Of a stretch of 38,262 nucleotides of DNA, positions 7,358-38,262 are shown piece by piece. This DNA comes from Pelomyxa schiedti (lineage: Eukaryota; Protista; Evosea), in the NCBI GenBank assembly GCA_020536535.1, contig JAHLWZ010000957.1, positions 1 through 38,262 on the forward strand, written 5' to 3'. Positions within the stretch are counted from its first letter, which is position 1, and each line of letters opens with the position of its first letter. Both the position numbers and the translations under genes were made by a program. The notes under the pieces were generated by a model. It was not told the DNA's origin, searched no databases, and saw nothing but the letters and a program-made list of their open reading frames with translations.

Positions 7358-9502
<2,145 letters not shown>

Positions 9503-16881: not shown

Positions 16882-19800
16882 CTAGAACATGGCTCGCCTC
16901 TTTTTTGTAGTAACACTGTTCGCCACTGCTTTCTTAGGCATTTGACTTGCAGCAGTGGTGGTTTGGCTTGCTGCTTGCTCGTCCACTTTCTTTCTTACAG
17001 CCAGGAAGAGAGCTTGAATATGACAAACCTGCAAATCTTCAGGAAAAATACTTTGGATGGCGCTGATGTCCCCTGGATATTTGAACTGCGGCCAGACATG
17101 CAGAACTTTGATGAGATTTCTTAAGGGGAATTCTGTTGTGAATCTATCCCCAATAATGTATCGAAGAACAACTCTCCCAAGCACAAACAGAATGATATGT
17201 AGAGTAATGCCAAAGGAGGTGAGGTTCTTAAGGAACATGTCGATAATTTCCACAGGTGGTGTCTCACAGTATGCAGGTTTGAGGTTTTTTACTTCAATGG
17301 GTAAGATCACATCTTCCAATGTTTCATACAATGTCACAATGCAGCGTAGTGGTGTGTTGGTAATCTCTGGTTGAACACCTTTGAAACTTAGTGTATCGGA
17401 AGACAGCCATTGCTTTGCATAATCAACAAGTGTCATATCTCTTGAACCACCGGTTTTGCACACACTTGATACAATTATTTGCAGCAGGGAGAGTGCTTTG
17501 TTTGTGTCTGGTATCCGTCCTTGCAACACAGTCAAAATGGCAGTGTTTATAGGGTGTGACCATTCTTGTTTCACCTAATTTTGCTATGTGAGTGGAAAAA
17601 CGAAGAATGAAGGAACCTTGCTTGCAACTTCAAGGAGAACGTGTTCACTGGACAAAAAAAGTTCCATGAAATAAGGGAAAGGTTCGATCCTATCAGCTTT
17701 CAATAACACACTATCTTTTACAATGGCCTGTGCAAGCTTGGACTCTATTGTTAAAAGATCATAGTGCATTTCAGTTCCAAATCCATACTCAGGGTTAGAA
17801 GCAGCAAATGGCAAAACGGTTTCCCATATTTCAGATGAAACGGATATGAAGTGAGGTTGCTGAGCGTTCTGAATATGAATTTCATGTAGGAGTCTAAGGC
17901 CACCCTCCTGCTGTAACATCTTTACAGATTTACAGCCCCTCAGTGCTATTTTAAAGGATTCCTCCAGGAACTGATTTTGATATTGTGCAATAGTGCTCAA
18001 CATCCCTGAAAACCAAAATGAGGCTTTCAAAGAAGAGGTACAATTTACCTGCCAGAAATATACCCTGATCTTTCTCGTCGATGCAACAGAGTTCAAAAGA
18101 TTGCATTTCGGACATAGAAGGAATTTGTTCTTGAGCAAACTTTTGGGATTGATACTGAATCTCTGAAGTATTAGTTAATATTCAGTTATTACATAACAAA
18201 AATTAGACCAGGCAAAGACTTCTTAATCGTATTCCAGGAAAGGGAGAATTGAGGAAACAGTTCTTTTAGATGAGGTACTCCTCTAATGATATGGGAAACA
18301 GCATTTTTGGCATCAGATCGTTTTACGAGATGGCCGAAATATTTTTTTACTGTAGCCACCCAGTTACACAACACCTGTAAGTGAGAAATATACTCCAGTT
18401 TCTGAAAGGAATTGAAAAGCAAGTGCAGGAATGGAAAGTCCGATCTTGAGTGAGGAAGACAGACAACCCTCGCTTTAAGCAATTCGTAGGAACCCAGGAG
18501 TGTTATACGGTACAAACGAGGTAGGCTTCGTGGATCCGGCTTGTCTACTTCAGTGATCTCTCTTTCTACTGGAGAGCTTTTTGCAAGCAGCATTTTCAAT
18601 CCATCAACAGTAAAGCTATTCAGGTTGTTGCATATGTGAGAATCCACAAATTTCTGCCATTCTATTTCCCATTTCGAGCGATCGGATTCAGTACAGAGTT
18701 GATGTCTTTGAAAGGAGAGTTTGGTAATTTGTAACAGTGACTGAATCACAACTAGGAGCATGACATCCTCAGTACAGCCAAGTAAATGCATAAGTATTTG
18801 CCAGTCATTGTTTATGTGGCTGCGGAACAAAGATTTAGGCTGGATTGAACTCTCTGATAGTAGAAAGGTAGATGACACAATCAGATGAAGTAAACGGTAG
18901 GCTGGAGGGGAGAGCTCTCTTTGAGTCCAATTCCATGACGCATTAACTTCTTCCTTAATATAACCAGTAACACTTGGAACCAGTTGTGTGATTTGTTCTA
19001 ACGGGTAGTTTGTGCCCTGATCAGCGCTCATGATTAAAGTACTACAAGAGGGACAGATGGTACTTTCTATCACTTTACCAGCACAACCAAGGATGAAATT
19101 TGTTCCACATTGGCATCTGTAATGCTTTACAGAATGGAGGGAGTCGGTACTTGGGGGTGCTGAAAAACCAGCCAAAACAAACTGGTCAGCGAATACTCCC
19201 TGCCTGTAAGATCCAAAGGGTGTTAGCTTTAGGTTTGATGTAGCTATTAATATGTCCAGAAATACAAGGATTACGCTAATATGAATATCATGAAGAGAGG
19301 ACACAGGCTTCAGAGAAAAAGGTTCCCTATTCTTAAGGATTTCCAGCAAAAGTCTTTTGTGAGGAAATTGAGATGGACATGCTGTTTCCACCCAGGAGAT
19401 CAAGTATTCTTCACCTTGGTGTAAAGGTCGTTGACTGTATGTAAGAAATATACTGCCGGAAAAAGCACATAAAAGGGATTGAGCTTTTTCATTGGTAGTT
19501 GCAGAAGACATAAATTCGTGCAGGAAAAGTGTCCTTCGGTCTTTAACCACCTCAGCTATAAGTTGCTCTCCCTCAGAGGCAGTGACAAGGAGATCAAAGG
19601 GATTGTAAATCAACCGATAATGTCTTGGAGCCCAATGGACAGTCTGGAGCCAGCTTGGTACTGTACTTTGCTTACAGAATTCCTCAATTTCAGTAATTCC
19701 CATCCCTTGCTGGTGAAGCAACTTCAAAAAGAAGGTTTTAGAGGCAATGGACCTTGGGTGCTCCTGTTGCTCAAAAAAAGCAGCAAAAAGGTCAAAAACA

Positions 19801-22800
19801 GCAGAACAGGGCATTTGACCAGTTTTAATTCCAATTGCAAAAAGACGAAGTAATGCACGCATAAGGGCAACAGCAAAACAAGTTCGAATGGAAACTACTT
19901 CACTTGAAAGTACATCCATAGCTGGTAAAAATGCAACTTTGATCCATGAAGCAGCCTCTTCCTGAGCCAAATTCGGGATTTCCTCCAAGTAGTTACTCTC
20001 CAAAATGGAACACAATACAGCTTGGATATTGCTTTCTAAATCAGGTGGCACAGGATGAAAGACTTTCTCTACTTCTACAAGTGCAGCTGGGGTGGTGGCA
20101 CAGACTGTTGCAAAAATGGTGGAATCGGTTTCTTTGGAGTGTTCAATTATTTCATCCAGCAAAACAGAGCAATGGCACAAGGATAAAAGCGAAGATGGGC
20201 CTACTGTGCTTAGAGAAGAATGTATATTTGATAACACAGATGGCAAAGAGTGGTCAAAAGCAATTTCCAATTTCTGGAAGTGCAGATTTCCAAGAAATGA
20301 TTGTAATAAAAGACATACTTCCACACAATTTACTTGTTTGATGCTCACAACTGCTTGAATAATTTTATTAAAGAGAGTGTCTGAGGTAAAAAAATCTTCA
20401 CTATCTGTTAATAAACACAGTTCAAGAAACTGTGAAATAGGAACACCATAGGGAATGATGAGGGAAAAATCATTTAGCAAATGCAATATAGACAATTCAA
20501 CTGGAGTAGTGATGGCCCATCTCCTTATGGAAGTCAAGGAATATTCTCTCACTTTCGAAGCAAGAGCTGACCACGATTCAATACCACCAGTTATCAGTAG
20601 GTCACTTTCAGAACCAGGAATCAAAAGTTTAGATGCCCGGGAAATAAGACCAGAAACAAATTCAGCACCAGTATAGTTGCAGTTAACCAATTCTAACATC
20701 TTATCTATTGGTAGTATTTTTGTGAGACAAGAGGCAAGTTGAATCTGTGATCGTATGGCATCACCTTTCAACCACCACCAAAAATGCACTTCAAATGGAG
20801 GCATATCTCCAGCACTCTTCTCAATATTGGCTTCAAGAATTTGTATCTGTTGTTGAAAGGAAAGTGCAGAACCCACATGCTTAATTGAAAAAAAATCTCG
20901 AAGGTACAAAAGAGTGGCACTGGTTCCTTTGCACAAAATTGTGTTCACTGCCGGTGGCAGCACTTCTTGTACTATTGATGCAAGGTCTTCAATGGCTTTG
21001 TCTTTAGAGACTTCGTAACTAGTAAGCACAACATCTCTGAAAGATTCAATCTTGGTCATGATTATATTGAAAAAGGGGAAACTTGTGTTAAAGTTTGTTC
21101 CCAGCCCTTGCAGTAAGATTCCAGGTTGGGGAATTGGCACCCCAGGTATATTTAATGCCTCGGTTGAAAACATGTAATCACAAAGAACTTTTATCATCTG
21201 TCCTGTTTCTTCATTGCCAGAGAGAAGGTAAGGATACAAGGCGCCAACATTTTCGAGGGCAAATAATACTCTGGAGAGAGCGGAAATTGCTTCAGCTGTA
21301 AAGAAGTCGATTAATGCTAGAATCAAGGAACCGTGACGTAGAAGTTTTGTTTTACTGCACGCAATTGTTATCTGCCATTGGGGGCACTGGGAGGACTGTT
21401 GTAATATTTCTTTTGTTTTTGATTGCAGGAAGTTCAACAATGACGAAGTCTTAATCAGAGACACCATATTTGTGATTCTGCTTGAGTACTGTATATCACT
21501 TGGATAAAGAATATTCATAAAAGCCCGTTCTAGTATTAGGTCAATCCCAAATTGTTGGTTGTCAAGAAGTTCATCCAATGGCTTGCTCAATAGTTTCTCC
21601 ACCATTAGACCGGGAAATGGGAGGTTAAGTGATTCAACAGTTGAAACAGTCCATCCACTCAGATAATCAAATAACCACTTTGAAGAATCTGCTCTGTGTT
21701 CATGTTGATTGAGGTACACTACAACACACACATGCTTTGGAGTGCTTTGTTGTGTTGCATGTGATTGATCAATTGCAAGTCGTAGTAAATGCATATTGTC
21801 TACATCCATAGGTTCACTAGCATTGCACTGTATGACAAGTAGGTTGGCTTCAGATTCAAAAAAAACCTGAATTTTTTGGCGAAGTTCTCGCTCCGACTTA
21901 AATATTCCCAAAGTTTCCAAGTGGAAAGTCATTAAACCATTTAGCTCCAAGGCTATATCACAATTGATTGGACTAAATGTAAGAACCTCCAACTTACACC
22001 CTTTTGGTGAATTCTGAATGTGCCACTCTAGAGCACTCTTTAAATTTATGTGGCTCTGCTTTTTGAAGTAGAGGTCCTTGAGGGAGCTAAAATGGCTTGC
22101 ACCTTGGGACTTGACAGTGCGCATAACTCCAGAAGCTGTGGCAAGCTGAGTTAAAGAGGATTTTAGTGTATCCAAAATAGCTTGGTCTTCTCCGTGGATA
22201 GACAGAATTAATGAACACAGTACATCCCTGTTCCATCCTAAAAAAAGGTCTTCGACACTGAACTCTGGGTGCTGGGGAAGTTTAGAAATTTCTTTTGACC
22301 ATGTTATTAGTTCTTGTAAATGCCGCTTTTGTACTTCAGTGAGCACTTCTTCATATGTGAGAACCTGCTTCTCAAACCGGTTCAAAAATGGGGGATCTGA
22401 GAAAGGCAGAGTCTGTTCTTCTGTTAAAACAATGCACCTAAAGGAATCATGCACAAAGCACATGGGGTTTGAATGGGCACCAAGTGCGATTCGACAATTT
22501 TTTCTTTCTCCAACTACTGTATAAGACTGATTCAGCAAATCATAAAGGCTGCCATAGATAGGTTCCAGACCTTTCAAGATCAAATGCTCACCATTTTCCA
22601 TCGCCAATATAATTCTGCTTAGAATTCGATAATAGTAGTCTGCACACTGATCATGGGGAAACTTGCTTCCATAGAGAAATGTAGGAGAGCATACACTCTG
22701 TAAGATCATATTGATTGCACTTTCCCCTCTTGTTATTATTAGAAGGTGCCTGGCACAAGGGTCGTGAATATTTTGTCTAATGAGTTCCATAACAGCAATT

Positions 22801-25800
22801 TTACGAAAATGGTGCTGTTTGCTTGTCATAGTTTTACTGAGGAAACCTTGACAGATGCCTTCAAGTGTTCTTGGAATACCACCAAAATTGCGTTGAATTG
22901 CCCCATTAAGGTGATCATAAACTTCCATGTCTGATGCATTGCCCTTGAGTGTACGAGAAATACACTTTATAAGTGAATAAAAGTCTCTAAGGCCATGAAA
23001 ATTGGCAGGGCTCTGTTTTTTTACATGCTCATAATAAGCTTCAGATAAGCCTTTAAGCCAGTTTTCAATTGGTTTCTCGATTGGTGTGTTTGGACATAAC
23101 CCTTTCAGTATTTCTTTAGCTGTATTTAAGAGATCAGCTGGCTCAGGATCAGGACGAGTGAGATGCAATGCTCGGTTCATTTTCGCAGCATCCAGTGCCC
23201 AATTAGAGATACCAATCACTGCTACTTCAGGTATCTCCTTAGGAAATCCTGGCTCCAGAAGGCTGTGCAATACCTTGAGTGGATTGTGACGGGAAATTTC
23301 AGCAAGCCCAACTTCATCAAGGATGACAACTGGAAGTACACCTTTCTTTACAAACTGCTTTGCTTTTGTGAAAACTTTTTTAATACCCTCAGAAGTAGCT
23401 GACTCGGAACCTTGGAATGATATACTTATGACTTGGTCACATTTTTGAAACCATTTATCCCGAGAATCAGCTCCTCTTAGGTTCCTGTTAATCAATTGCA
23501 TGGAAAGAGATTTACTGCACCCAGGTTTGCCAACCAAAAATATTGGAATTTTGTTCAAAATGCATACCAAAAGAACAAATACATTCTCAAGAAGTGCTTC
23601 ATTTAACGCTGTTCCAGGAGGAAGTTCCATCCTCTTTAAGTAATCTTTCTGCTCTTTTCTAAGAATCTTCAAATATTCCTGCTCTCCATACCCTTTGTTG
23701 TACCCACAAGAGTGCAACACATGGCATGCCAGCTTACGAAACTGCTGTCGTAGAATTGGTGTTTCAAGTGCGGAGTGGTAGCAATGAGACAATGCAAGAA
23801 TAATGGCTTTTACAGAGGGGTGTACCTGTAGTTCTGGTTTGTGCCGACGGGAAGTTTGTTGCTGCCAGTTAGAAAGACCAATCCTTTTTTCTCTTAAGGG
23901 CCGAGAAAAGCTTGCCATAAACCAATGGAAAAGTCGTATGAAACGTCTTATATCTCGCAAACTTACACTCCAAGGTGTATGCACTTTTCTCAAAAAAGAT
24001 TGAGACCGTGACAGTAACTTGCTCACAGTCGACACGTACTCTGATGGAAACTGTGGCATATCTGGAACAGATTGTGATAACATACAGGAAATATAAGCTT
24101 TCTCATCCTCTTCCGAGAGGCACCCATAGTCAAACACATACTCCAGCATGGACTCAGGCAGTGGCAAGACGGAGTAAACGAGCCTTGTCTGATTGGGTGT
24201 AACCTGTACTTTGGTTGACAGTAAGCCACCAGCTGTTACCTCTGAGATACCGCATAGACGATAAGGATTGCAAGCAGCAAGGAAAGTGATATTGGAAGGA
24301 AGAGGAGATCCCAACAGTCGATGATGCACCACAACTTCCGACAGTACCCCAATATGTTCAGAGGTATTTATTTCATCAAAAAATGCCCAGCAGTCTTGTG
24401 TACTTCCTGTCTGAGCTGTGAGTTTGTTACACTTTTGTGTAACATCTCTAATGAAGTTAATGATTTCTTCTAACGATGTGCCAGCATGGCAATTCAGGGT
24501 TTCAAAAACAGGCAAGTCCAAAACACTTTTTAAGAATCTAATCAAGCTTGTTTTCCCACACCCAGTGTCTCCCATCAAAATCACAGGAACGTGGCAATGA
24601 ACCCGGGTTATTACCATTGCCATTTTTAATAAGTTGTCAGGGGTAATAGAGTATCCTTGAAGTACAGACTGGCAAGGGCTATTGTCTACTCTGCTTATTC
24701 TTTTCAGTTTTTCAATTAATTGAGGCTCTGATAGAGCTCGGTAGTCTTCTAATGTCTTACTTGGGCTCTGTGTTGTCAATAGTTTCTCAAAGGTCTTTGG
24801 CATATTTGTTTTGTAGAGAGCAGTAATCGACTGTGCATCAACAGAATGAAATATAACCATGAAAAAATCCAAATTCTCCCAGCTTTGAGTGTGAGAATTG
24901 AATAGCTGAACCAGTCGTTCTTCAGGTACATGTGATAAGCTTCTTTTTACCTCTTGTTGTTGAAGATTTCCAATGCCACTAGTTGCAAATTTTGATGCAA
25001 CTTGACATAAAACATCAACTAAGAGTGACCTAGTGTTTGGGTCAGCCCCCATGGCCTGGAGATTTTCAACTCGGAAAAACTGACTGAGTGACATCTTCCT
25101 CAGTTGATCAGAAAAGATTCTGAGGAAGGTGAATAAAAGGAAAAATGATGGTGGCCAGTCTATCCTTGACAAGAAGAATTGATTGAGGAGCACCTTACAT
25201 CGAGCATCTGGGATTACTAAAGCATTTGAAGCATTCAAGTCTTCACCAAAGGAAATTTCTTGAGTATCAATGAGGTGTTTGTCTTGTGAGTCAAGATAAT
25301 TGCAGACCACTTGAATGGGGTGCTTTATATTGTGGTTCACAATAAGGTTATCTAGTGACCATGTCAACCTTTCTTCTTTAAATAAACTTCCCAAGTAGAA
25401 CTGGTTTATAAGCTGACTTTCTGCTGTGTTGGCAATTTCAATAAATATCATTCTTTCAGAAGGAATATGGTAAACACGCTTTGCCCCACTAGAGATTGAA
25501 CCAAGAACAATTAACTCAAATAGAATGGTACTCAGTAATTCAGGGTCATTTACCATCCCAATATTTAAGTGCAAGGCTTCAAATTTGCTAAGCTTAGCAC
25601 TTCTCAAACTAGACAATATACTGCCTCTTTCAACTGGACCACTGATATCCACAGTACACACCCCCTTTCCCATTTCAAAGCACTTCTGGAAAATCATTTC
25701 AGTTTTTCCAAGACCCGCGCTGGTTGAGGATACAATTGTTACACTTGGAAACATATTTGTCAGGAGCGTGTGTAATTGTGGTGTTGGCATTCCAGCAATA

Positions 25801-28800
25801 TGCTGGCTAATTGAATTGAATGCATTTCCAATCCATTGTTTTCCATTCTTTCTTTGGCACACAAGGGCCAATCTGAACTGGTTGTGAGCTTCCTGAGCTT
25901 GCATTACAGTTTTCGATATATGTTGTTGGGATTCAGTAGATAACAATTCTGGGTGAACACAGCAATAAAGGGAGTCAGGGAACCCGGCTTTTGTAGCCCC
26001 CAGGCATCTATTAAGAAAAATTTCGATTTCTTCTTGCTTTGTTTCAGATGTACAGAAAATCAACTCGTGACGTTCTGGCATAAATCCATGATTGGTGTAC
26101 AATGCCATTACTACATTCAATTCAGATTTATCCCCAATAATTGCAACAAAAATTTTCCCCATGGTAACTTGGCAATCAGTGAACTGATCTCTCGTTTCAT
26201 TAAACACCAATGGCACTTTACATCGCTTGTGTGTTAGAAATACTGATAAATTTTCCCCAAGGGCATTGAGACACTCAAGGTTAAACTGGATGGGAGGAAG
26301 TACTGCTGCACATTTAAGTGTAACTTCAGAGGGTAACAAACAAATTAATTCCTGGACTTCAGAACTTATGTGACCTGAGAGAAGTAGATTGTAAAGAGTC
26401 CATATTTGGTTACTTAAGAAGAAATTCAAAACATAGTGATGTTTTCGTGACTCGTCAAGAGCATTCACAACTTCATCCAGAGAATTGTCAAGATCTCTAT
26501 TCATTTCCTGAAGTGTGTGTACATTTGTATGTTCACAAGCATATTTTGAACCGCAAACGCCAAGGTCGAATATGATGTTCAGTGAAGAGACAATATCTTG
26601 AATTATATCAACAACTAGAATAAATTGCTGCATTGAATTCAATTCAATCTGGCTTGTTGTTCCAGAGAGTCTAACAGTAGGCTTCACTCTTTGATAATCT
26701 GTTGAGGTAAAAAGTAAAGCACGACTCCTCAGGTCAAGTAAATCATTCAGAGTCTTCATGCCAGGCTTCTCTCTGAACGTCAAGACTACCTCACATTGGG
26801 AATCCTTAAAGAAAAAGCGAAATGTGCCTTGACTTATTGTGTTTTGTACAATTTCTCTTGTAACTTCTCCTCTGTTGGCCAGTGAATCAAAGGCATGTTG
26901 TAAGGCATAGAAATTTTCATTACAACTGCGTAGTTTTCCAGCAATTGAAGGACATTCACTACTCACTCTATTCACAACATTAATAAACTCCTCTAAAGAA
27001 CAGAGAGGCTTAACATTGTCTACCAGTGGGGAGATCAGGCGCTTCAAGTCAACCAAGTCAGCTACACATCCTTCTTGGAGCATCTCATCAGAATAGTCTT
27101 CAAAAGCACCTACCAATTGGCGGAGATCCTCAGATCGTTTCTCCTTCAGGAATGTAATCAAAAGTGTACTATCAGTAAGCATTTCAATAAAAGGCCAACT
27201 TGCAGTAGTAACAGCAGAGATTAGACTGGTGAGTTGTTTAGTTTTTATTGCAACATCAGTGATAAGGGAGGCATCAATTTTAGCTGGCTCTAGTGCATCC
27301 ACAGTAACTTGCAGTTTTGAGCAATGCTGTGAAAGTTCACAGATTATCATCGCTCTTAGAAGAAAGGCAGTATTTCGCCTATGGGTTGCTAAAGATAGCA
27401 CAGATTCAAGAGCTTGTTTAGTCTGAGGTGTGAAAGGCGCAAATAATCTCTCTGCTTGAAAGATTTCTGAGGATAGGGATTGGGGATCTATTGAGCCGAA
27501 TACTTCACAAGCAACCTCAAAGGTGAGAGGTTTACTTTGTGCAAGGTTCCTCCAGAAGGAATTAAAACAAGTTAAAGCCGAATTCATAGCTGTCAAAACC
27601 TCATCAACTGTAGAGGGGGTTGTGTGTTTGACCTCAGATTGCCAAAAACTTTGGAAGCTGGTCATATTATAAACTGGAAGTACTAGTTTGAGATGACTTA
27701 AGGGTAACAAAAATGGGTTCCAGAACTCCAAACTTCCTGCCTCCTGTATTCTCAAAGGTGCTCCTTGTGTGTTTTTCCCTTCTTTGAGAACTTGAGCAAA
27801 GCTGGACAATTCTTCTGAAGCAAATGTAGGCACACAAAATTGACGAAGAAACACACTAATGCTTTCAAAGTTTTTGGAGAATTGATTGAAATCGTTCATA
27901 GCTACCTCCACTATCCGAGAGGCTTCAGTTTTGTTAACAGTAAAAGGAGTGATAAACTGAGCAATGGTCAGGGACTCAATAGCAGTGAGGGATTGGAATT
28001 CTTGGATGGGCATTGTTCTTTCAGATAAAGCCCTGGCAAGTTGACTCAGAGTGTTTCTTACTGTTTGCACTTTGATATTTGCATGAGTGATGGGACAACT
28101 CTCTGTTAACATAATAATTCGCCACCAAAAAGGTCCTCCTTTCATCACTGTTACAGCTAAATTATCAGAAGTATGCTCTGGATTGATTGTAGGCAACAAC
28201 TCTAAAAGGTGGCACATGCAAGTGTCAATGAGGGAATTGCTCACTGTATATTCTGAATAAATTGCTGGTTGGCAATGACAAAGTTTAGCTATAATTGCAT
28301 CCAGTTGAGGGAGTGATGGAGTGGCAGAAAAATATGGCTTGATAAAATCCTTGAAGCCATTGAAATACAATTCCATGTTATTTGAGGTGGAAACATCACA
28401 GGCAGTCTCCAAGAAATCGGGCAAAGTGAGAGATTTTTCTATAACAGAATTGTATAAAGTAGATTGGAGGGGACCATCAGATAACTTGGAAAATAAAAGA
28501 GATGCGGACTTCCATAAAACTTGATTAGTGGGGGCACTGTGAAGCCAGGCACTGCAAGTCCCTTTAATAAGCTCATGTGAAGCTCCCTGCTGTTTGAGAG
28601 AGTTGATGATAGGTGGGAAAAGAGTCCAATTACAACCAGTCAATGAAAACTTCGTAACTAGCTCCTTCAGTAAAGTGGGAAAAGAGTTGTCTCCAAAGAG
28701 ATTAGGCAAATCAAAGAAAGGAAGCAAGTCAGATTCCACAGTGGCATTCAATACTTCAGATTTCACTATATTAGCAAGTTCTTCCTGAAAGTTCTGTAGT

Positions 28801-31800
28801 CTCGTCATATTCTCAGATTTGCAGTATGTGAACATAGCAACACGTGATTGCTTCGACCAGTATTTGGTGCAAGGTGAGCAGTGAAACTCAGGAATGTACA
28901 TAGAGGCCTTCTGAAAACAATTCAGATATTGTTGTACTGTTGGTGCAGAAGTGGCCAAGGAGTTAAATATAACTTTTAGATGAGCCTCTTTACTGATTGG
29001 TCTCTTTTGTATAAGTTCGATAACAAAATTCACAAGGTCAGCATATTCTTTGTCCAAGAATTTCTGTTCGGTACATGGTTTGATAAAGTCTAGCCAGGTG
29101 AGTGGTATTTGGTGTATGCTTAAGAGATTCATCCAACTTCTGGGATTAGAAATTGGAAGAGTGACCAATCTTTTGATTGCACACTCCAAACAGTTTAAAA
29201 TGAATCCTGGTAAGGATACACCATTAGAAAGACTTTCTCCAATAGCTTTGAATGAAAGATCAGGATTGGGCCACAAGAAAGAAGGTTGTGACAGATATTG
29301 ATCATTTGAGACTATATAACCAAAAACTATAACAGCCAGGAAGTCCTCATGTATTTGGGGGGAGTGATGCAAAGGTAGTATTTCTTTAGAGGGTTCCAAC
29401 TGAGAAAGGAGTGCTTGCAGTTGGGTAAAATCTTTGCTGGCTGAGGAGACAAAGGCATTGCAACATAGCTTAAAATAGCACCTGAAGACAGAGACATGGT
29501 TACAAGAGGCTAAATAACACTTGAGGCTCAATCGGAATTGATGTGGCCAATGAAAATCAACAAGATTATTACTGTCTGATGTAGCACATTCCCAACAGAG
29601 TTCCTCTTTTGTTTGATGTAGGAACTTGTACTGAACAGCCTTCATGTTAGTGAAGAAAAATGATGGAGAAGACCAATCAACAATACCACTAAAATCTGTT
29701 CCACGTTGTAAGGCCACCTGCCAATGGAAATTACTTAGGGGGAATAGCAGTTAATACACCAAAACCCTTTTACTTTAGGCGGTGCAAATAGACTTACCCT
29801 CATATCCTTGTCCCAGGTTCCAAGCAGTTGGTCATTTCCAACAATATAGACAGAGTGAACCCTTTCTGGTGCACAGACATGAAAAATAATTGGTGTGAGG
29901 TAAGAAACTTCCAATGTTCTTATAATTGCAGAAGTGTGGTTGACCCGGGAAGAAAGAAAGGAATCCAAGGCCAGTGTTTGACAGGAGGAAGCTATGCCCA
30001 CCATGGGATGAGTGAATTTGAGACTGCTCACATCTACGTATGATAGTAAAACCATGACACAACAGTGGGTGTCCCCACCATATGAAGGATGTAGGTATTT
30101 GCAGATGATTTGTTGATAGGAACTGGAGGAAATACTTTTAATGGGGCACACCTTGCACAGTTCATTCATTCTCCACAATTTGGGAGTGATATGCATTGGT
30201 GTGTTTAGCAAGTAATAAATACATGGTAAGATGTAAGACCATGACCATTCCCCCGGTGGGATATAAAGAATTCCCGAGGAGGGTAGTGAGATATTTGAGG
30301 AAAAAGAAGTTGAGATAGAAGTGAGCATAGAACCAGCATGAAACTCAGCTGTGTATATTTGACGTGAAGAAGATATTTCTGTGCAAGATAAATGGATCTA
30401 GGCTACTTCAGTTCTATAGAACAACAGGGGTGCATACCGAAAGAGAATTTGGGAGGATTATTATTGGTTCCCGGTTTTGGATTGGGCAGGAGTAACACAG
30501 AAAGTAGGTTTTCTTTTCTTCCTTAGGGGAAGATAAGGTACTCAGGGCACGTTTGTGAAAGCTGAGGGTATCTCTGCTTAACACTGTTGTATTGTTTGAA
30601 GGTGTTCCTGAAGAAAGGAGACTTTGAGGAGGGGTTTCGGGAAGAGTTACATAGGGTGGAACCAAGTCTAAGAGATATTCTGTCTTACATTATTTTTAAA
30701 GAGATGTGAAATGCAGAACCATTGTCCCTTGTAATAGTCTCATGCCCCATGTATGATGGGTGAAGGTGCCAAGCTTTGATGCACTCTGAACACAACAACC
30801 GGTCACATGACTTGCAAAATGTAAAGCACTCCTCTTCCTTGGACTTCATCATAAATGAGGTGCAGTATGAGCACTCTAACCAATAAAGGCTATCAATATT
30901 TGTTGAAATTTTAGACCACATTTACTTTTAATGGCTCCCCTTTTGTGGGTTTGTCTGCCCTTTGACTTATGGGAATTAGTCAAACAACTGAAGCAATAAA
31001 ATTCCTTGCAGTCAACACAGAAAAAAGATGCATCTTCCCCCCCATAGTCACACTTAATTATGGAAACTGTCAAAGCTAAGAATAATTTAGATCTCCCTGA
31101 AATAGAGAATAAGAGGATAATTGACACACATTGGTGACACCTTAGTTCAGGGGAACGATGTACAAAATCAAAGCACTGTTTACAAAGCAGCTTTCTACAT
31201 TGTGGGCATTCAGTGCAAGAGACTGTACTGGAGTTGCACCATCCACAAGTAGGCACTACAACACTCACCACCACAGACTGAGCAGGGTCTCGGTGATGTG
31301 AGAGTTTCAAGTGCATAACTGCATCACAGGCTGTGCAGAAAAGGGGGGCATCCAGGCAGTCAGCACATCGGAAAAGTCCCTCTTTCTTCCCACAGTTACC
31401 ACATCCTGTGTAACATTTATTTGATTCCTTGATGGGAGTTTTGCGTACTTATAAGTTCTATGGTTGTGTGTTTCTTGCGAGCCTCGCTCTTGTGGGTTGC
31501 CTTGAAACATGCCAAACAAAACAGTGCAGGCTTCAACTCTTTAAAACATTGTTCACATTTCTTCACAGCCGGTAATTCTTCACACGCTTGGCACGGATCT
31601 GTTGCTGGTGGTTGCGTTCCTACCGATAGTCAAACGGTTGTTCGGCGTCGTACGTGCAGCTAAAATTTGTTTTGTGAAAGAACGACCTGAGTGGTCCCTA
31701 TTCACATACGCGGTGTGATAGAAGGCATAGCAACGAGAACAATACGTCACACCACACTCAGTGCAGGGACAACCGGCCGCCCCTTCGCATTTGTAACACA

Positions 31801-31807
31801 CCTGCAT
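16882..31807 (-). CDS. Giant RNF213/mysterin-like AAA+ ATPase-E3 ligase (~4,800 aa): 6 B-box-like Zn fingers - CBM20 - stalk - dynein-like AAA+ core - E3 module with RZ-like finger - CTD
   Basis: RNF213 hallmark motifs in the 3842-aa ORF: SAGLGKT, LMGDTGCGKTSLI, FFDEINT, AACNPYR, SVSLRDIRR, FLVGKPGCSKSLS, LDEVGLAEISRHNPLKVLHSLLE, GISNWALDAAKMNR, FHGLRDFYSLIK, YDLLNQ, PFLNRFEKQ. Intron 29718-29797 (gtaagt..cag, phase 0) links it to upstream exons. Three short introns link it to the exons ending at 16882. The AAA+ core call is very secure; attachment of the B-box exons is likely but inferred. Confidence 0.9.
29585..29890 (-). other. CBM20-like carbohydrate-binding domain split by intron 29718-29797
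   Basis: Spliced sequence IIFHVCAPERVHSVYIVGNDQLLGTWDKDMR|VALQRGTDFSGIVDWS...VQYKF...LCWE matches the CBM20 pattern VxGxxxxLGxW...W...YKF...WE. Animal RNF213 also has an N-terminal CBM20-like domain. Confidence 0.78.
30730..31807 (-). other. Six tandem B-box-like zinc fingers (N-terminus of the RNF213-like gene)
   Basis: Six units of CxxC..CxxC..[FYL]CxxC...H..H: CYKC/CTEC/YCSRC; CQAC/CEQC/FCLAC; CGNC/CADC/FCTAC; CGWC/CPQC/LCKQC; CDYG/CVDC/YCFSC; CSYC/CKSC/LCSEC. Short GT-AG introns lie between several units. Confidence 0.8.
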
Positions 31808-31843
31808 TTTCTGGATAAAAAAAAGAAACGGGGTTTTTTCTTT

Positions 31844-32944
31844 TTATAAGATTGGGGGGAGATCGGGGAGAGTTGATGAACAGGCAGCTTTAATTTTGGT
31901 ATAATCCCTGGCATTGCCGCTTGCAGGGCGCCCAAGGGCCGTTACACTCCACCCTCCTGTTATTCGTTGTAGCACACACATAAGTACAGCCTGCCAGGCA
32001 CCAGCTTTGCGAATTGGGAAATCACTCAAAGGGTTGTTGGGCGTGCTCTGGTCATAGAGGCTTACTGTGGGTGCAGAAAAATGGCGTATAGTTGGCACTT
32101 TCCATGCACTCAGAACAAAAAAGAAGTAGGCAGAGTCAATGGGAACCTTGGAGAGAGAAATGGAGATGTGGTGTGTCCCACGCTCGACACTGCGGTCCAG
32201 AATATCACCCGAGTGTCGTAAACATGCATGAGGTCTTCTATGGTGATAATCTGCAAGGAAAAGGAACTTTCCACGTTTGTCATAGACAAGACAGGTTCCA
32301 TCAAGGTAATCAGTTTTGTGAGAAGGAAACCCCCAGGAGAGGTCAAGCCTAATTTCCGATAGGCTTGCTTGAGGTCCAACGAAACAGTGCATCACAACCA
32401 GCAACTGAACGTTACTTGTGGGAGAAACGGAATGAGTACCAAGTGTCGCTTTACTGCCATTCGGCATGACATCAGTGAGTTCTTTACCATTGGAAATCAA
32501 TCGCTGCTTCTCCACCGTGATATCGGTGCGCCTTTTAACGATACGCTTTATTCTAGAAATTTTAGTTTTTGTCTTGAACGGGACTTGTATAACGTCCCCT
32601 GCCAGCAGTGAGATAAAAAGAGTTCCTTGTGTTGCAGATACTGTCCTGTTCGAGTTGCCTTGTGGAATGGAATAAGACTGCGCAGTCCACTGCTGTTGAA
32701 GAATTTGTTGGTCTTCCACAGGAATAGGAGAGCTGCAAACAGGGCACGGCTTCTCGCTGGAAACGGCATCAAAGTGAAGATACTTGGCTAAACACTTAAC
32801 AAGCATTAAATTGTAAAAACCTCCAGCTGTATAACAAACCACGAGACACCAGGTTGGGTGATGGTGGCAGCCAGGGCCCATTGTCCTCGAGGAAGGAAAG
32901 TCTTCGCGTAGTTTCCTTTCGGCACAAGACGCACACAAAGCCAT
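31844..32944 (-). CDS. RING finger - ubiquitin-like - TerD domain protein (2 exons)
   Basis: ATG at 32944. Removing the 45-nt GT-AG intron 32795-32839 gives CASC..CHH.PTWCLVC..CPVC (C3HC4-like RING). Ubl: LFISLLAGDVIQV..KISRIKRIV..TVEKQRLISNGKEL..VQLLVV, with no di-Gly. TerD-like: IRLDLSW..DYLDGTCLVYD..LRHSGD..ISISLSKVP..FFFVLS..WSVTALG. Confidence 0.8.
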   Translation of the reverse strand: MALCASCAERKLREDFPSSRTMGPGCHHHPTWCLVVCYTAGGFYNLMLVKCLAKYLHFDAVSSEKPCPVCSSPIPVEDQQILQQQWTAQSYSIPQGNSNRTVSATQGTLFISLLAGDVIQVPFKTKTKISRIKRIVKRRTDITVEKQRLISNGKELTDVMPNGSKATLGTHSVSPTSNVQLLVVMHCFVGPQASLSEIRLDLSWGFPSHKTDYLDGTCLVYDKRGKFLFLADYHHRRPHACLRHSGDILDRSVERGTHHISISLSKVPIDSAYFFFVLSAWKVPTIRHFSAPTVSLYDQSTPNNPLSDFPIRKAGAWQAVLMCVLQRITGGWSVTALGRPASGNARDYTKIKAACSSTLPDLPPIL

Positions 32945-33158
32945 TCCACAAAGCAAGTTCTTTAAGGAAAAAATGAAAGGGTTATTGCAAGAATCATCAG
33001 GAGAAATATAACTCTGAGACTGAAACCTCCTCGCCACACTGAGACGTGTGTTCTGTTCCCTAACATCTCCAACTCGATCTCTCGGTAACAGTTCCGAAAT
33101 TTCTCCCCACGAACCTGAAGGTGCTGTTCCTTGAACCGTCTAAGAGCTCTTTTAGCCG

Positions 33159-34845
33159 ATGCGAGCCGTTATTACCCACCTTCGGGTTTCGTTTGCTCTG
33201 GTTGTTGTCCTTTCTTGTTTTGCCTCTGCCACAACCACGTACGACGTGGTAGCCGACTGCGGCGCCAAAGGGGACGGCGTCACGTCGGACGTCCAGGCCA
33301 TCCGCTACTGCGTCTCCAAGGCCGGGGCGACGCCGGGCGGGGCGACCGTCCGGTTCCCGGCGGGCAACTACCTCACCGGCCGCATCAGCCTCGAGTCCAA
33401 CGTGCGGCTGTGGCTCGACCGCGACGCCACGCTGCTGGGCTCGCTCGACGTAAACGACTACAGCGCGACCAACCACGACGCCTGGGCGCTGATCCACGCC
33501 TACCAGGTCTCCAACGTCAGCCTCGAGGGCGACGGCGCCGTCGACGGCCGCGCGGCCCTGTGGGTCGACCACTGGGACGAGCCCGAGCTGCAGCTGGTGC
33601 CGTGGAACAACAGCACCAACACGATCTGGAGCGGGTACGGGGGCTGCACCGGGTCCAACTGCAGGCCCAGGCTCGCGTGGTTCATACAGTGCGACAACAT
33701 CACCATCAAGGGCATCACGCTGAGGAACAGCGCCTTTTGGACTCTGCACATTTTGGGATCGTCGAATATCTACATTAGCGGAATCCACATCCTCGGTGAT
33801 GACAGGTGAGAAAAAAAGTTGGAATTGGTATTGGAATTGTTGTGCTCTCATTTCTTTAGAATCTTTATGGACTGCCTTGTTTAATGTTTAGTAGTTGTAC
33901 TCTAATGCAATAATAATAATATTTGGTAGGTTCCCTAACAATGATGCATTTGATCCTGACTCTTCTCACAACATCGTTTTTGAGAACAACTACCTTGACA
34001 CTGGTGATGATGGCGTATGTCCCAAAGCAACTTCAGGCTATGGACAGACGTATAACATGCACGTTCGGAACTGCACAATTAGATCCCGTTCGTGTGCTGT
34101 GAAGTTCGGTTCAGTTAACGCCGAAGACAGTGCGTTCCAATCTTCTTTGCTAAGCTAGAAGCCCACTCACTTTATCAACATTTCCTAGTGCACGATATGG
34201 TATTCGAAAATCTCACAATTTGGGATACCAATCGAGGTCTTGGCATTCAGCAACGTGACCCTGGCAACATCTACAACATAACATTCCGCAATATCAAAAT
34301 TTATGGAACCCGTTACTGGCCTGATACATGGTGGGGTGTAGCTGAGGTATTTCTGCTTTATACCCTTATCACAACGACTAAACGGTCCACTTACATAACA
34401 GCCAATCTATGTGGTCTCTGCACAAAGAAATGAGGGATACCCTACAGCTGGCATCTCACATGATATTACATTCGAGGACATCGAAGCAGTGGCAGAGAAC
34501 GGCATAATCATATCTGGAAGAATTGCAAACGGCGGTCAATCACCACGCAATATCACACTGCGGAATATCAAGTTGCACATTGACCGATACAGCAATATCT
34601 CCTCCCCCAGTCATGACTACAGGCCGTCCTCCGATCCCGAGGTTGTGGTGTGTGATATTGATGGAATCTATCTGGAGAGTGCACAAGAAGTAACTCTTGA
34701 CAACGTAAAAATCACCTATGGAACACCAACGCAAGACTTCTATGGGGTGTGTCTGGGAGGCTACAATTCCACTTATAAGTTAATTAACTTTGATTGCACT
34801 GATCCAGTCAAGCCGAAAAAAAGGGAAGAGGAAGTTGACAAGTAA
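33159..34845 (+). CDS. Secreted glycoside hydrolase family 28 (polygalacturonase-like beta-helix); exons 33159-33805, 33930-34129, 34189-34346, 34402-34845
   Basis: Signal peptide MRAVITHLRVSFALVVVLSCFASA. Motifs GAKGDGVTSDVQAI, FPAGNYLTG, GDGAVDG, RPRL, LRNSAFWTLH, and acidic catalytic motifs PNNDAFD and TGDDGVCPK, then CAVKFGS and WWGVAEPIYV. All three introns are GT-AG and restore the frame. Confidence 0.9.
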
Positions 34846-34918
34846 CTTTTTTAAAAAAAAAACTTGTTCTACCCTCTGTCTATTTACAGTCGCAAGAAAA
34901 GATTGCATTTTGTGAGTG

Positions 34919-37900
34919 TTACACCTTAGTCTGCTGGGTTTGCCCCAACAGAGAAAGTTGGAGTATCTTGTTCAAATTGGCTTGTGCAGGCAGGAACATG
35001 GTATCTGTGGGTATTTTTCCATGTGGAGGAATGTCACACTTACAAGGAACTCCGGGCTTGTGCGCAATGTGGTTTTCGTCTCCACTGGAAGCAGAGTCCG
35101 CACTTGTTGTTAGGTCTAAAAGATTGAGGTGGGGTGCATGAGTTGTAGGGGCCGAGTGTGGAATTAGGGGAGGTGTAACGGGACTCTTGATTCTCTTGGG
35201 AACCGTGGGTGATGACGCTGAGGGTGGTAACACTTGTGATGCTGATGATGACGAGCAGGTTGTAGTGGCTGCGGTGATGGAGGTACTGACAACTGTTGAG
35301 GAGACTAACGGGGGGGCAGAAAGTGAGCACAGGGAGAGAATGTTCTCGGCCAAGGAAGTTACCGAGGAGTTCGTGGCGGCGCAGGATAAGCGTGGGGATG
35401 TGTGGGGCGTTGGGAGTGTCTCGGAGCTATGCGGAGAGACGGCGGGAGTTTGAACCGGCGTGCTGGTTGCGGCAGGGGCCGTGGTTCCAGAAGTGAGGGG
35501 TAAATCGGGGGGTTGTGTGGAATCATTGGGTGGCACTGGCGGTGATGGTGCGGGAGAATTCTGCGTGGCGGGGATGGAATCGTTGGGTGGTGATGGTTCC
35601 TTGTTCGGAGTCTTACTCCTTGGGCGAGGGGGTGGAGTTTGGCTTCTGCGTGGCGGAGTTTTGCTTCTTGGGGGGGTTTGACTTCTTGGTGTCTTGCTGC
35701 GGGCTCTCTTTCTTAGGGATACTTCTTCCCCAACTTCTTTGGGCAGGTTCAGCATGTGCCGCCATTTAAATTGAGTGTGGGTGTGGAAGAGACTGAGAAT
35801 CTCTGGGTTGGACATATGTCCCACAATGACAGATTCTTGAGGCAGATGGAGAGTGGTAGAATACTGATACGCTGTTTCTATGTTGTTTTCTTCCAAACAG
35901 AGAGCCGGTGATAAATCAGCATTTAGAGGTGATGCAGCGGCTGCCTTCTCCAGTAGTGCAATGAAAAATTTGATAAACCTGAAAGTTATTTAAGGACATC
36001 CTACTTTCTACAATTATTTCTACCGCTCAACAAAACAAGCCATGTTAACACTCTCTGCCTCGGCTTTTTTCAGTAGCCAAGAGCACACCAAATCAGATTG
36101 ATAGAAGCGGTTTGTAGCAAGATCGCACTCAATGAGAGAGTAGTCGATAAGCTTGTATAGAATATTACGGGTTTCAGTGCAATCCTCCTGTTGGAGTACC
36201 GCCATAGCGGCAGTGATGTCAAATGTGCCTTTAAACACAGTCAGCGGAATTGCCCATTTCTCAATCAAATCACGTGAAGCTGCCTCTAGGAAGTAAGGTC
36301 TAAGAAGCTCGGAGTGTTGTTCCATTGTGTTCAGTTTATTGATCAGCATTTCCGGAGAAATGTTGGCAGAGGTATTTAGTTGACTGGCAGCCTTTCGGAT
36401 AGGAACAGGCATCAGACAACAGAGTTGAACTATATACTCCGCCTGATCTTGTGAGAGGGGAACTTGGGGACACAGTGACTTTAGCAGTAATATAGCATCA
36501 GAAGGCAAAAGAGCACCGATGCGCAATTTTAGACATGGAGATTCTGTTAGAGCGTATTTAGACAAATAAGAGTGATTTGCCGTACCAATTACAGAATCCA
36601 AGGGAATATGCTGTTGAGACGTTAAAAGAACAAGGCATGGAGATGAATATTTCGGAATGAGTTGCAAAACTTGCTCACAGCCACCGACATCTTCAATGAG
36701 AACAATGGCACTTTTTCCCCTGAAGCAGCCTGGACCAAATTTAGCCATTGCTAGGTTAATAACAAGGTTAACTTTGATACATTCCACACAGTTCAGACTC
36801 ATTTTCTGGAAGTGTTCCAACAGATGACAATGTTCGTATGGCTCCTTTCATAGCATCGCGCACCTTTAAGGAGATCAATAATGATGAATACTGTGAGTGA
36901 AGTTACTGTTGTTGACCCCAGGTTCATTTGAACGTAGACATCAGCAAACTTGGGGGAAAACTGGCGCGCAACATGTTGCATAATACTAGTTTTACCCACC
37001 AGTGGAAGTCCAAAGAGGAGTACCACAAGTGGAGAGTCTAATGCAAGTAAAACAGTGTGAGGAGCGGTGCCAAAGTACCTGGCAAGGAGTTTGTAATAAA
37101 CGATGATATCAAATTCAATTCGTAGTCTCTTCCAATCAGGTGATTACTTCTCTGAGTGATGGAATCTAGAGAAAACTAAATGATGATTATGCCAAACTGA
37201 AGTACAATTCAGTGCCGGCCTTCCCATAAATTTTCTTTCATCAATCATAGAAGGGCTCATTTCAGAGATACTGCCTTGCCTCCTGACGTAAGCTCTGGCA
37301 CTCTAGTACTAGTGTGACATGTCGACAAAGAAAATGTATGAAACAAACCCTGGTTTGGTCATTTGTCATATAAATTGGGGCTCTTCCTTTTGCAACCTTC
37401 ACTTCAACAACAAATACATCCTCCAGCAGAATTCCTTCACTGGTTTTAATTGGAATAAAAGAAACACTCCACATTTCAGGATCAATTTCTGGTCGGAAAT
37501 CTGGTGGGAGGGACGGTTGAAGCACACTTTAGAGAAAAAAAGGAACCTGAGAGGGTTATTACTTGAAATAAGTCCATCCAATTTCAACCTTAAGTCATCA
37601 CGAAAACTACGCTGAAGACATATTCCTGAAATAGTACCATCATCAGCAACTCCAAAGAATATTGTACCACCAGAAGCATTCACAAAAGCATTCAAATATC
37701 TCTGGATGAAGGGTACAAAAAAAAAATAAAAAATAGGAACATACAACTGCTATTGTTGAAATGAAGCCTGTCACCTCAGTGACATTCGTCAAAGACTTGA
37801 ATCTGCATTGAGTAAGACTCTTTTGTTTTTTTGGCAATTTCTAACACACTCATGTTCTGAGTCTTCCTCAAAAGGTATCTTCGAGTCAAGGGTATAGTAT

Positions 37901-38262
37901 CTAGTACTTGAAGGTTGCATTGGATCAGCTTGCATATCGATGTTCTGAAGATGTGAACACACATCGGGTGATTTCGATTTTGATGTTGGTATGGACAAAG
38001 AGTGAGCCGCCACAATAGCATCCAGGGAATTGGGCTCAGATATAACAGGCACTACAGTAGTGAGGTCTTCATCTTCACTCAATCTAAGAGTAGTTGGCCT
38101 TCCACGCGTTGCTATATTGACCTTTGGCTCCGCACACACTTTCTTATCGGGGACTACGTCCCGGCTGTCATTGGCATTGACAGTGACAGTGACAGATACA
38201 GATACAGGGGCAGGGGCAGGGACAGGTACAGACTTCGATGATGGGATGCCACCCAGTGTTTG
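34919..38262 (-). CDS. Schlafen (AlbA_2) domain - NB-ARC/STAND NTPase - winged helix - Pro/Ser/Thr-rich tail; 5'-partial, multi-exon
   Basis: AlbA_2: FEEDSEHE|FKSL, YLNAFVNASGGTIFFGVADDGTISGI, VVEVKV, YVRRQGS. STAND: LIGRDYEL, Walker A LFGLPLVGKTS (~36988-37014), Walker B AIVLIEDV, LVLLTSQ, IVQLCCLMPVPIRKAA (GxP region), LTVFKGTFDITAAMAV, LIDYSLI, RFYQSDLV (MHD position). Stop at 34919-34921. Confidence 0.85.
38170..38232. repeat. Degenerate 6-nt tandem repeat in coding sequence (encodes VPVPAPAPVSVSVTVTV on the minus strand)
   Basis: gacagt gacagt gacaga tacaga tacagg ggcagg ggcagg gacagg tacaga. Confidence 0.7.

Follow-up and report, generated by a model that had tools for sequence, protein, structure and literature searches.

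Cell-autonomous immunity in animals and bacteria depends centrally on RNF213, on Schlafen nucleases, and on STAND switches, which to our knowledge have hardly been studied in protists. Described features of RNF213 include an N-terminal CBM20, proposed as its ligand-recognition domain, and an RZ finger in which C, H, C, and C bind Zn, one Cys acts as nucleophile, and a His serves as general base (PMC11549300). A modular design of sensor plus Schlafen serves phage defense in bacteria, and bNACHT34 carries a Schlafen RNase as the effector on a STAND NTPase (Kibby 2022/2023; PMC13056530). SAMD9/SAMD9L are described as an AlbA_2 effector joined to a STAND-like NTPase (Mekhedov 2017, as summarized in PMC13056530). 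We found no paper joining RNF213 with Amoebozoa and no relevant paper on defense islands in amoebae.

Layout of the locus

We analyzed a 38,262-nucleotide contig of Pelomyxa schiedti (C957; hereafter the window), an organism in which bacteria and archaea live free in the cytosol (PMC10579272). A preliminary description had read its right part (16882–38262) as a possible linked immunity module and had reported three co-oriented minus-strand genes, interrupted by a GH28 gene and having longer exons than the genes to the left. All four genes were recovered: an RNF213-like giant (gene A), a RING-Ubl-TerD gene (gene B), and a Schlafen-NB-ARC gene (gene D) on the minus strand, with the plus-strand GH28 gene between genes B and D. 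The difference in open frames was equally evident, the longest stop-free frames being 3853, 431, 356, and 275 codons in the right part and at most 263 codons to the left of 16882. The window contains 0 Ns and its only contig break is spanned by one DNA run with a k-1 overlap; the physical linkage of genes A, B, and D holds. Single-cell transcriptomes of unchallenged cells contain transcripts of all four genes, and RNA contigs show that 3′ UTRs at this locus can be as short as ~10 nt. Profile and structure searches were run on single exons or on the database proteins P0002 and P0003, and spliced joins served frame reading only.

The GH28 glycoside hydrolase gene (33159–34845, plus strand) exceeded the profile cut-off of 22.9 with a score of 27.4 bits and has three RNA-confirmed GT..AG introns (33804–33927, 34130–34188, and 34345–34399). 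Its presence is consistent with polysaccharide digestion by P. schiedti (PMC10579272).

Domains and predicted activities of the three genes

Gene A (16882–30328, minus strand, as are all its features below) is labeled RNF213 in GenBank, where its protein P0002 (4411 aa) maps from 30328 to 16885. A large, intron-free exon of 11.5 kb (18189–29717) holds an ORF of 3842 codons, and the C-terminal exons lie at 16882–18138. Profile and structure-chain matches placed a dynein-like AAA core at 22005–24659, with E values of 1e-121 to 6e-121 against the PDB chains of human and mouse RNF213. Two Walker A/B pairs were found within it (24549–24572/24363–24383 and 23508–23531/23307–23327), the Walker A motifs being GDTGCGKT and GKPGCSKS with an hhhhDE Walker B after each; by motif, both AAA modules are predicted to be catalytically competent and could drive ATP-dependent assembly. 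The CBM20 (29585–29890, split by an intron at ~29721–29788) was matched at residues 147–222 of P0002 (PF00686; 30.9 bits, cut-off 23.3) and, together with the stalk, may bind a glycan-bearing surface.

The preliminary description had noted that animal RNF213 ubiquitylates the LPS of cytosolic bacteria via its RZ finger and had suggested ubiquitin tagging of intruders at this locus. No RING was found across P0002 with a strict or a loose pattern or by Pfam, and the RZ-derived zinc finger (19017–19124) is degenerate, its PF20173 score of 14.7 bits falling short of the 27-bit cut-off. We compared its residues by eye with those of the paralogue on contig C1063, whose RZ is canonical (39.6 bits) and aligns to mouse RNF213. 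Five Cys are retained, so that every Cys position of the RZ is occupied, the catalytic one included, while the general-base His position is occupied by Gln and the Zn-binding His is replaced; an extra Cys lies nearby, as it does in the paralogue. An alternative assignment as a DPH3-type CSL finger (E 0.15–0.57) matched no better than the RZ and was rejected. With neither a RING nor the general-base His of the RZ, this paralogue appears a doubtful candidate for ubiquitin tagging via the RZ finger, and any ubiquitin transfer would have to use the Cys that the degenerate finger has kept. The genome, annotated in GenBank with 19,876 genes, holds at least 14 RNF213-like loci on 11 contigs. The idea that the intron-free giant or gene D came from a virus was set aside after two IMG/VR scans, a method detecting close relatives only, returned no relative.

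Six B-boxes (~30700–31807, minus strand; Pfam) are placed between genes A and B. They probably belong to an N-terminal extension of gene A (30438–31807) that is absent from the GenBank model: an RNA-confirmed intron (30398–30437) links a linker exon (30438–30689) in frame to the annotated ORF, 115 stop-free codons lie upstream of the annotated ATG (p ~6e-4), and frame reading allows a GT-AG exon chain starting at ATG 31807. The B-boxes themselves are covered by no RNA contig. If part of the gene, the array might add oligomerization or E2 contact; the genome contains at least 98 B-box loci.

Gene B (31844–32944, minus strand; 351 aa, stop codon TAA at 31844–31846) encodes a putative E3 ligase of the RING type that also carries a ubiquitin-like domain and a beta-sandwich of the TerD fold. 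The canonical C3HC4 RING is visible only once the RNA-confirmed 45-nt intron at 32795–32839 is spliced out, and the ORF at 31844–33037 gave a ubiquitin match of 28.5 bits and TerD matches of 25.0–27.2 bits (TerD cut-off 25.3). The AF2 model of the TerD region (31916–32368; pLDDT 68.5) had TerD structures as its best Foldseek matches (probability 1.0, TM 0.56–0.66), and the TerD fold is confirmed at the level of the model. In bacteria, this fold binds Ca2+. The Ca2+-loop region of gene B retains just an SGD...E...G remnant, common to the Mylnosiga homologue, in a segment with pLDDT <50. Relatives of gene B were found in Mylnosiga (a complete ORF), on the metagenome contig L013, and in mollusc-rich Atlas clusters; all are stand-alone and stop 12–19 residues beyond the conserved TerD end. 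Word-index searches returned the Mylnosiga protein only, and a metagenome scan gave only two contigs, which at 1.7 and 1.9 kb are too short for synteny. TerD is found at one locus in the P. schiedti genome. The earlier use of TerD as a defense marker derives only from its bacterial context and is not supported by the eukaryotic Ubl-TerD proteins, which stand alone.

Gene D (34911–37935, minus strand, poly(A) site at ~34911) encodes the Schlafen(AlbA_2)-NB-ARC STAND protein P0003 (854 aa, mapping from 37935 to 34922). The AlbA_2 domain (exons at ~37262–37935) spans residues 24–160 and reached 56.1 bits, well above the cut-off of 25.3, with one exon alone giving 34 bits. Residues E24, E29, and D68 align to positions 218, 223, and 261 of the 5YD0 chain (+13 offset), that is, to the catalytic residues E205, E210, and D248 of rSLFN13 (PMC5862951), and by this alignment the Schlafen E-E-D triad is intact. 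The P-loop exon (36799–37026) and the NB-ARC/winged-helix exon (36020–36820) follow, with an NB-ARC match of 24.3 bits (cut-off 23.5). The NTPase is closest to Streptomyces AfsR (8K60; E 3e-10, residues 211–485), and among the top 48 relatives retrieved with the NTPase exon, 37 have NB-ARC and 19 have TPRs. A six-frame NB-ARC search of the genome remained blank, the domain being split by introns.

Pfam found no repeat sensor (LRR, TPR, or WD40) in P0003, where residues ~580–854 form a Ser/Pro/Thr-rich tract (tail at 34919–35896), nor any SAM, SIR2, TPR, or OB domain, the matches being AlbA_2, NB-ARC, and AAA_16 only. Long basic or Ser/Pro-rich tails are found in both Pelomyxa Schlafen-NB-ARC paralogues, the two AlbA_2/NB-ARC loci of the genome, and the family is conserved in Amoebozoa (Mastigella, Mastigamoeba, Cavostelium, and Arcella), the homologue in Mastigamoeba balamuthi being m51a1_g1172. 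The NB-ARC would act as a nucleotide switch controlling the N-terminal Schlafen RNase, which once activated may cleave tRNA or rRNA. The analysis shows the domains, key residues, splicing, expression, and genome counts of the three genes, whereas the activities proposed for them, and any role in immunity, are inferred. An immune-type domain logic is credible for two of the three, gene A with its CBM20 and gene D with its triad fused to an NB-ARC switch.

Recurrence, chance, and rival explanations

The proposal of a linked module would lead one to look for linkage elsewhere. Among the RNF213-like, NACHT (~12), TIR (3), TerD, and AlbA_2 loci of P. schiedti, members of different families share a contig on C957 alone, and a genome-wide search found the RNF213/TerD/Schlafen-NB-ARC combination repeated at no other locus; the paralogues are scattered with no cross-family linkage, a result of low power. 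The Schlafen paralogue on contig C518 has unrelated, housekeeping neighbors, and the homologue P0010, on the 34-kb Logan contig L005 from another organism, lies with a GPCR, COG7, an aspartyl protease, and a mitochondrial carrier. Synteny with C957 is absent at these two loci, the only comparable ones, a comparison of very low power (n = 2). Scattered paralogues and missing synteny are two of the three outcomes that the preliminary description had named as speaking against its reading. Because recurrent co-localization of the families was not found, a defense island at C957 is not established.

The number of triples expected by chance within 21.4 kb depended on the families admitted: ~2e-5 for the exact three and ~7e-4 for a five-family list, and about 0.01–2 for broader "immune-like" vocabularies (~0.02–0.08 for 60–100 genes and 0.18–2.2 for 130–300 genes). 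The caveat, raised at the outset, that members of expanded families may meet by chance applies to the RNF213-like and B-box genes; for TerD and Schlafen-NB-ARC, it is ruled out by their one and two loci.

We hold with moderate confidence that the right half of C957 is an unexceptional, densely packed part of the genome in which three independently acting ubiquitin/surveillance-type genes are neighbors by happenstance, with a digestive GH28 among them. The lack of recurrence, the unrelated neighbors on C518 and L005, the stand-alone Ubl-TerD relatives, and a GH28 that fits digestion speak for such a juxtaposition. Against it, the narrow-list expectations are so low that chance is not comfortable for anyone who takes TerD as a defense marker from the start, the spacing of only 36 nt and the shared frame of genes A and B hint at coupling, and the synteny comparison covers two loci only. 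Animal RNF213 also works in just such a setting as the prokaryote-bearing cytosol of this host (PMC10579272, PMC11549300). Beyond the one adjacency, nothing shows joint action of genes A, B, and D, and a functional unit is not demonstrated.

It is unlikely, in our judgment, that the three genes form a selected and co-regulated immunity module, in which gene A would recognize and coat its targets, gene B would ubiquitylate, and gene D would shut off translation, the targets being symbionts in the cytosol, bacterial prey, or giant viruses. The rarity of the triple under narrow family lists would fit such a module, as would the uniqueness of TerD and the scarcity of AlbA_2/NB-ARC in the genome, the expression of all genes in the same single-cell transcriptomes, the intact triad of gene D, and the documented cytosolic symbionts (PMC10579272). 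The arrangement is nevertheless a single locus without synteny on C518 or L005, and the other RNF213-like (at least 13), NACHT, and TIR loci share no contig with a member of another family. An opposite-strand digestive gene lies inside the cluster, nothing ties eukaryotic TerD proteins to defense, and with the B-box loci so numerous, the higher expectations of the longer gene lists also count against the module. Very many genomes were screened, moreover, and one such triple somewhere is expected.

The closeness of genes B and A could alternatively mean that these two are a pair or a single unit, with gene D as a bystander; gene B would then supply the RING missing from gene A, in trans or in cis by TAA read-through or an unseen splice. 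The TAA of gene B and the ATG at 31807 share a frame and are separated by 12 sense codons, gene B has the canonical RING that gene A is without, and the RNA contigs of gene B end at 31898 in two runs, short of the stop codon. An in-frame stretch of 12 codons without a stop has, however, a chance probability of ~0.15, no RNA contig bridges 31650–31897, and a 36-nt spacing is unremarkable since local 3′ UTRs can be so short. With the relatives of gene B being complete stand-alone proteins and a TerD neighbor being found at no other RNF213-like locus, we regard this as distinctly unlikely; a single fused gene with one in-frame TAA was set aside as the relatives stand alone.

A role outside immunity for all three genes appears very unlikely. 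The RNF213-like proteins would then serve lipid-droplet, membrane, or symbiont housekeeping, gene D would be a stress-regulated RNA-turnover factor, and gene B a Ca2+-related E3 ligase. Mammalian RNF213 acts on lipid droplets too, the degenerate RZ and missing RING count against its known antibacterial chemistry, and the sensor-less, long-tailed form of gene D points the same way. Yet Schlafen-STAND NTPase fusions are so far known in defense contexts, namely bNACHT34 and bacterial Schlafens (PMC13056530). Gene A likewise retains CBM20, the proposed ligand-recognition domain of RNF213. SAMD9 is a further Schlafen-STAND example from a defense context. Highly improbable, finally, is a selected linkage group policing cytosolic prokaryotes as the eukaryotic counterpart of a bacterial defense island, in which the RING- and RZ-His-less gene A is served by gene B, 36 nt upstream and in frame, as a split E3 machine and is joined by the Schlafen-NB-ARC switch.

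The present value of the locus lies in its individual genes and a corrected gene model, not in an island. From an amoeba tolerating cytosolic bacteria and archaea, C957 offers three expressed genes as concrete objects for study: an RNF213 variant that has no RING and whose RZ remnant retains cysteines only, an Amoebozoa-conserved Schlafen-NB-ARC family with an intact catalytic triad, and a putative RING-Ubl-TerD ligase. If the linkage were selected, it would be the first defense-island-like arrangement in an amoeba.

Comparison with known systems

The locus resembles prokaryotic defense islands and plant or fungal NLR clusters in having several immune-type genes within ~21 kb. It takes recurrent co-localization in many genomes to define a defense island, however, and tandem paralogues to define an NLR cluster, whereas C957 is one locus with no recurrence.

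Gene B has the fold of bacterial TerD (Klebsiella 2KXT, Streptomyces 2QZ7; TM as above) and shares the ~340-aa Ubl+TerD architecture of the eukaryotic Atlas clusters with a score of 0.94. It differs in adding an N-terminal C3HC4 RING, in a Ca2+-loop region that is poorly conserved and modeled with low confidence, and in its lack of a ter operon context.

Mammalian RNF213 (mysterin; 8S24/6TAX) and gene A have in common an AAA core of ~900 residues with two Walker A/B modules, an N-terminal CBM20, giant size, and a zinc finger where the RZ is expected. Unlike the mammalian protein, gene A is without RING, its RZ is below the Pfam cut-off and has Cys for the Zn-binding His and Gln for the general-base His, and its N terminus probably carries six B-boxes; it is also one of at least 14 paralogues and has an intron-free exon of 11.5 kb.

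Gene D has three partial counterparts. With bNACHT34 and the bacterial Schlafen fusions it shares a STAND NTPase whose effector, at the N terminus, is a Schlafen RNase, but it has NB-ARC in place of NACHT and is a eukaryotic, intron-containing, and Amoebozoa-conserved gene with no repeat sensor. Its NTPase relatives, mostly NB-ARC and often with TPRs, link it to the NB-ARC-TPR proteins of the AfsR/SARP type, from which it is set apart by a Ser/Pro-rich tail of ~350 residues instead of TPRs and by having no DNA-binding SARP domain. SAMD9/SAMD9L are likewise eukaryotic, with an AlbA_2/Schlafen-type nuclease N-terminal to a STAND P-loop switch; the NTPase of gene D is an AfsR-like NB-ARC, and SAM, SIR2, TPR, and OB are missing. 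As judged from its domains, gene D is an analogue of SAMD9, not a family member, and each of genes A, B, and D adds a variant or a further member to a type already known.

Gene order and its genomic setting

Domain matches, RNA-confirmed introns and the GenBank annotation confirmed the arrangement proposed in the preliminary description: three co-oriented minus-strand genes encoding an RNF213-family giant (gene A, 16882-30328, probably on to 31807), a RING-Ubl-TerD protein (gene B, 31844-32944) and a Schlafen-NB-ARC protein (gene D, 34911-37935), with a plus-strand GH28 gene (33159-34845) between genes B and D. The GH28 gene scored above the Pfam cut-off, had three RNA-confirmed introns and fits the amoeba's polysaccharide digestion (PMC10579272). 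Two Logan contigs of a DNA run, of mean depth 47 and 16, break at 34761-34790, where they overlap by 30 nt and a low-depth side branch of 46 nt arises; the join is unambiguous, and uneven single-cell amplification would fit the depth difference. To the left of the cluster, the neighbors resemble housekeeping genes, with minus-strand exons of a uridine kinase/PRK-like protein (8795-9532) and a class-III aminotransferase (10455-10850), and GC is 45-48% in this region versus 39-41% over gene A.

Searches with our own query sequences used single exons or the database proteins P0002 (gene A) and P0003 (gene D). The window spans the entire contig C957 of a genome of 52.4 Mb in 5337 contigs; the published assembly has 19,876 genes with 7.43 introns per gene (PMC8887013). 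Six-frame searches of the whole genome, whose counts are lower bounds, located one TerD locus, two AlbA_2 (Schlafen-type nuclease) loci, at least 14 RNF213-like AAA cores on 11 contigs, about 12 NACHT loci, three TIR loci, three canonical RZ (RNF213-type) zinc fingers and at least 98 B-box matches. Different families among RNF213-like, NACHT, TIR, TerD and AlbA_2 were joined on a single contig only here. The number of triples expected within 21.4 kb varied with the gene list used: 1.9e-5 when restricted to exactly these three families, 6.5e-4 when any three of the five families could contribute one member each, and 2.5e-3, 0.18 and 2.2 for any 32, 130 and 300 "immune-like" genes, respectively; the triple was picked post hoc among very many genomes, which further weakens any p-value. 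The second Schlafen-NB-ARC gene of P. schiedti, on contig C518, had unrelated neighbors, with no RNF213-like or TerD linkage, and so did a gene D homologue on a 34-kb Logan contig. The cluster had been read as a possible physically linked immunity module; as the families meet on no other contig and the neighbors of both gene D relatives are unrelated, this "island" remains a single unreplicated adjacency. The immune-type domain logic behind the proposal held for genes A and D and weakly for gene B. Our literature search turned up no paper dealing with RNF213 in Amoebozoa or with Schlafen-NB-ARC proteins in amoebae. The cytosol of P. schiedti holds a free bacterium (Ca. Syntrophus) and a free methanogen, and a clostridial symbiont lives inside vesicles (PMC10579272).

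The NACHT and RNF213-like families are strikingly intron-poor relative to the genome mean of 7.4 introns per gene, with stop-free frames of 1370-2906 codons (NACHT; C682, C231, C820, C185, C387, C381 and C42) and 3035-3853 codons (RNF213-like; C1063 and C492). C347 carries three RNF213-like AAA cores (at about 2-5, 36-39 and 52-54 kb) and C11 carries two, and the family therefore expands by local duplication. On C231 (3276-81427), two NACHT matches (3276-3743 and 40227-40505) were accompanied by an RZ finger that matched strongly (81305-81427; 71.6 bits) and lies outside any RNF213-like AAA locus.

The RNF213-like giant

The 3842-codon open reading frame of gene A (18189-29717) matched human and mouse RNF213 structures over residues 1687-2571, the AAA3-AAA4 region (E ~1e-121), and a database protein identical to it bears the name "E3 ubiquitin-protein ligase RNF213 [Pelomyxa schiedti]." The gene has two Walker A/B pairs and dynein-type AAA Pfam matches. 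The GenBank model P0002 (4411 aa; 30328 to 16885) contains a CBM20 domain scoring above the Pfam cut-off, a domain recently found in human RNF213 too (PMC11549300); a pattern search of P0002 gave no RING.

At the RZ position (19017-19124), a five-cysteine finger scored 14.7 bits, short of the cut-off of 27. We compared it with mouse RNF213 via the paralogue on C1063, whose canonical RZ finger is alignable to the mouse protein. By this comparison, the finger retains both the first and the last Cys pair as well as the nucleophile-position Cys; it has another residue in place of the Zn-binding His, with an additional Cys close by, and Gln in place of the general-base His (residue roles from PMC11549300). 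The DPH3/KTI11 CSL zinc finger (PDB 1WGE and 2JR7; E 0.15-0.57) resembles this finger as well.

An RNA contig revealed a 40-nt GT..AG intron on the minus strand (30398-30437), removal of which brings 30438-30689 in frame with the annotated gene. With this RNA-confirmed splice, the frame thus stays open for 115 codons upstream of the ATG annotated at 30328 (chance probability ~6e-4), and the annotated start is therefore probably too far downstream and the N-terminus too short. The closest coding sequence upstream of the extended frame is an array of six B-boxes starting at ATG 31807. The two can be linked by a series of canonical introns, with RNA contigs lacking over the B-boxes, and we consider it likely that the array belongs to gene A.

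The RING-Ubl-TerD gene

After splicing of an RNA-confirmed 45-nt intron (32795-32839), gene B encodes 351 residues, with a canonical C3HC4 RING at the start, then a ubiquitin-like domain and a TerD domain. The C-terminal 183 residues were modeled with AlphaFold (pLDDT 68.5), and the best structural matches to this model were crystal and NMR structures of TerD (probability 1.0, TM 0.56-0.66). In the word-indexed database, the only sequence relative was a complete 535-aa frame of the choanoflagellate Mylnosiga fluctuans, which stops 19 residues past the aligned TerD domain; a metagenome contig with introns codes for a Ubl-TerD protein with a similar C-terminal end, and in the ESM Atlas, eukaryotic Ubl+TerD proteins of ~340 aa form clusters. 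The TAA of gene B and the ATG of the B-box array share a frame, 12 sense codons (36 nt) apart (31805-31846). Sequence comparison marks gene B as a separate gene and a member of a wider eukaryotic Ubl-TerD family, because its relatives end soon after TerD and the Atlas contains such clusters. Gene B RNA contigs of two runs terminate exactly at 31898, and a third at 31917; the former position lies 52 nt before the stop codon, between the conserved DYT, which it directly follows, and an A-rich stretch, and shows neither loose letters nor a GT donor.

The Schlafen-NB-ARC gene and its relatives

The annotated gene D protein, P0003, matched AlbA_2 (56 bits) and NB-ARC (24.3 bits), and its NTPase aligned with Streptomyces AfsR (E 3e-10). 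Its AlbA_2 residues E24, E29 and D68 lie opposite E205, E210 and D248 of rat SLFN13, which are catalytic in that protein (PMC5862951). The C-terminus carries a Ser/Pro-rich tail in place of a repeat sensor. The poly(A) tail of the mRNA begins ~8-10 nt past the stop codon (34909-34921), which is itself ~75 nt from the stop of the convergent GH28 gene.

When the NTPase exon was used in an exhaustive HMMER search, 262 relatives were recovered; among the best 48, NB-ARC was present in 37, TPRs in 19 and AlbA_2 in 11. Mastigella, Mastigamoeba, Cavostelium and Arcella have proteins of the AlbA_2-NB-ARC form. The P. schiedti paralogue P0005 (C518:10559-14694), annotated as a "SARP family transcriptional regulator," has an intact E-E-D triad and a tail of 700 residues, rich in Lys, Ser, Thr and Pro, that contains NLS-like runs of basic residues. 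The nearest described analogues of the P. schiedti Schlafen-NB-ARC proteins are bNACHT34, bacterial Schlafen fusions and SAMD9.
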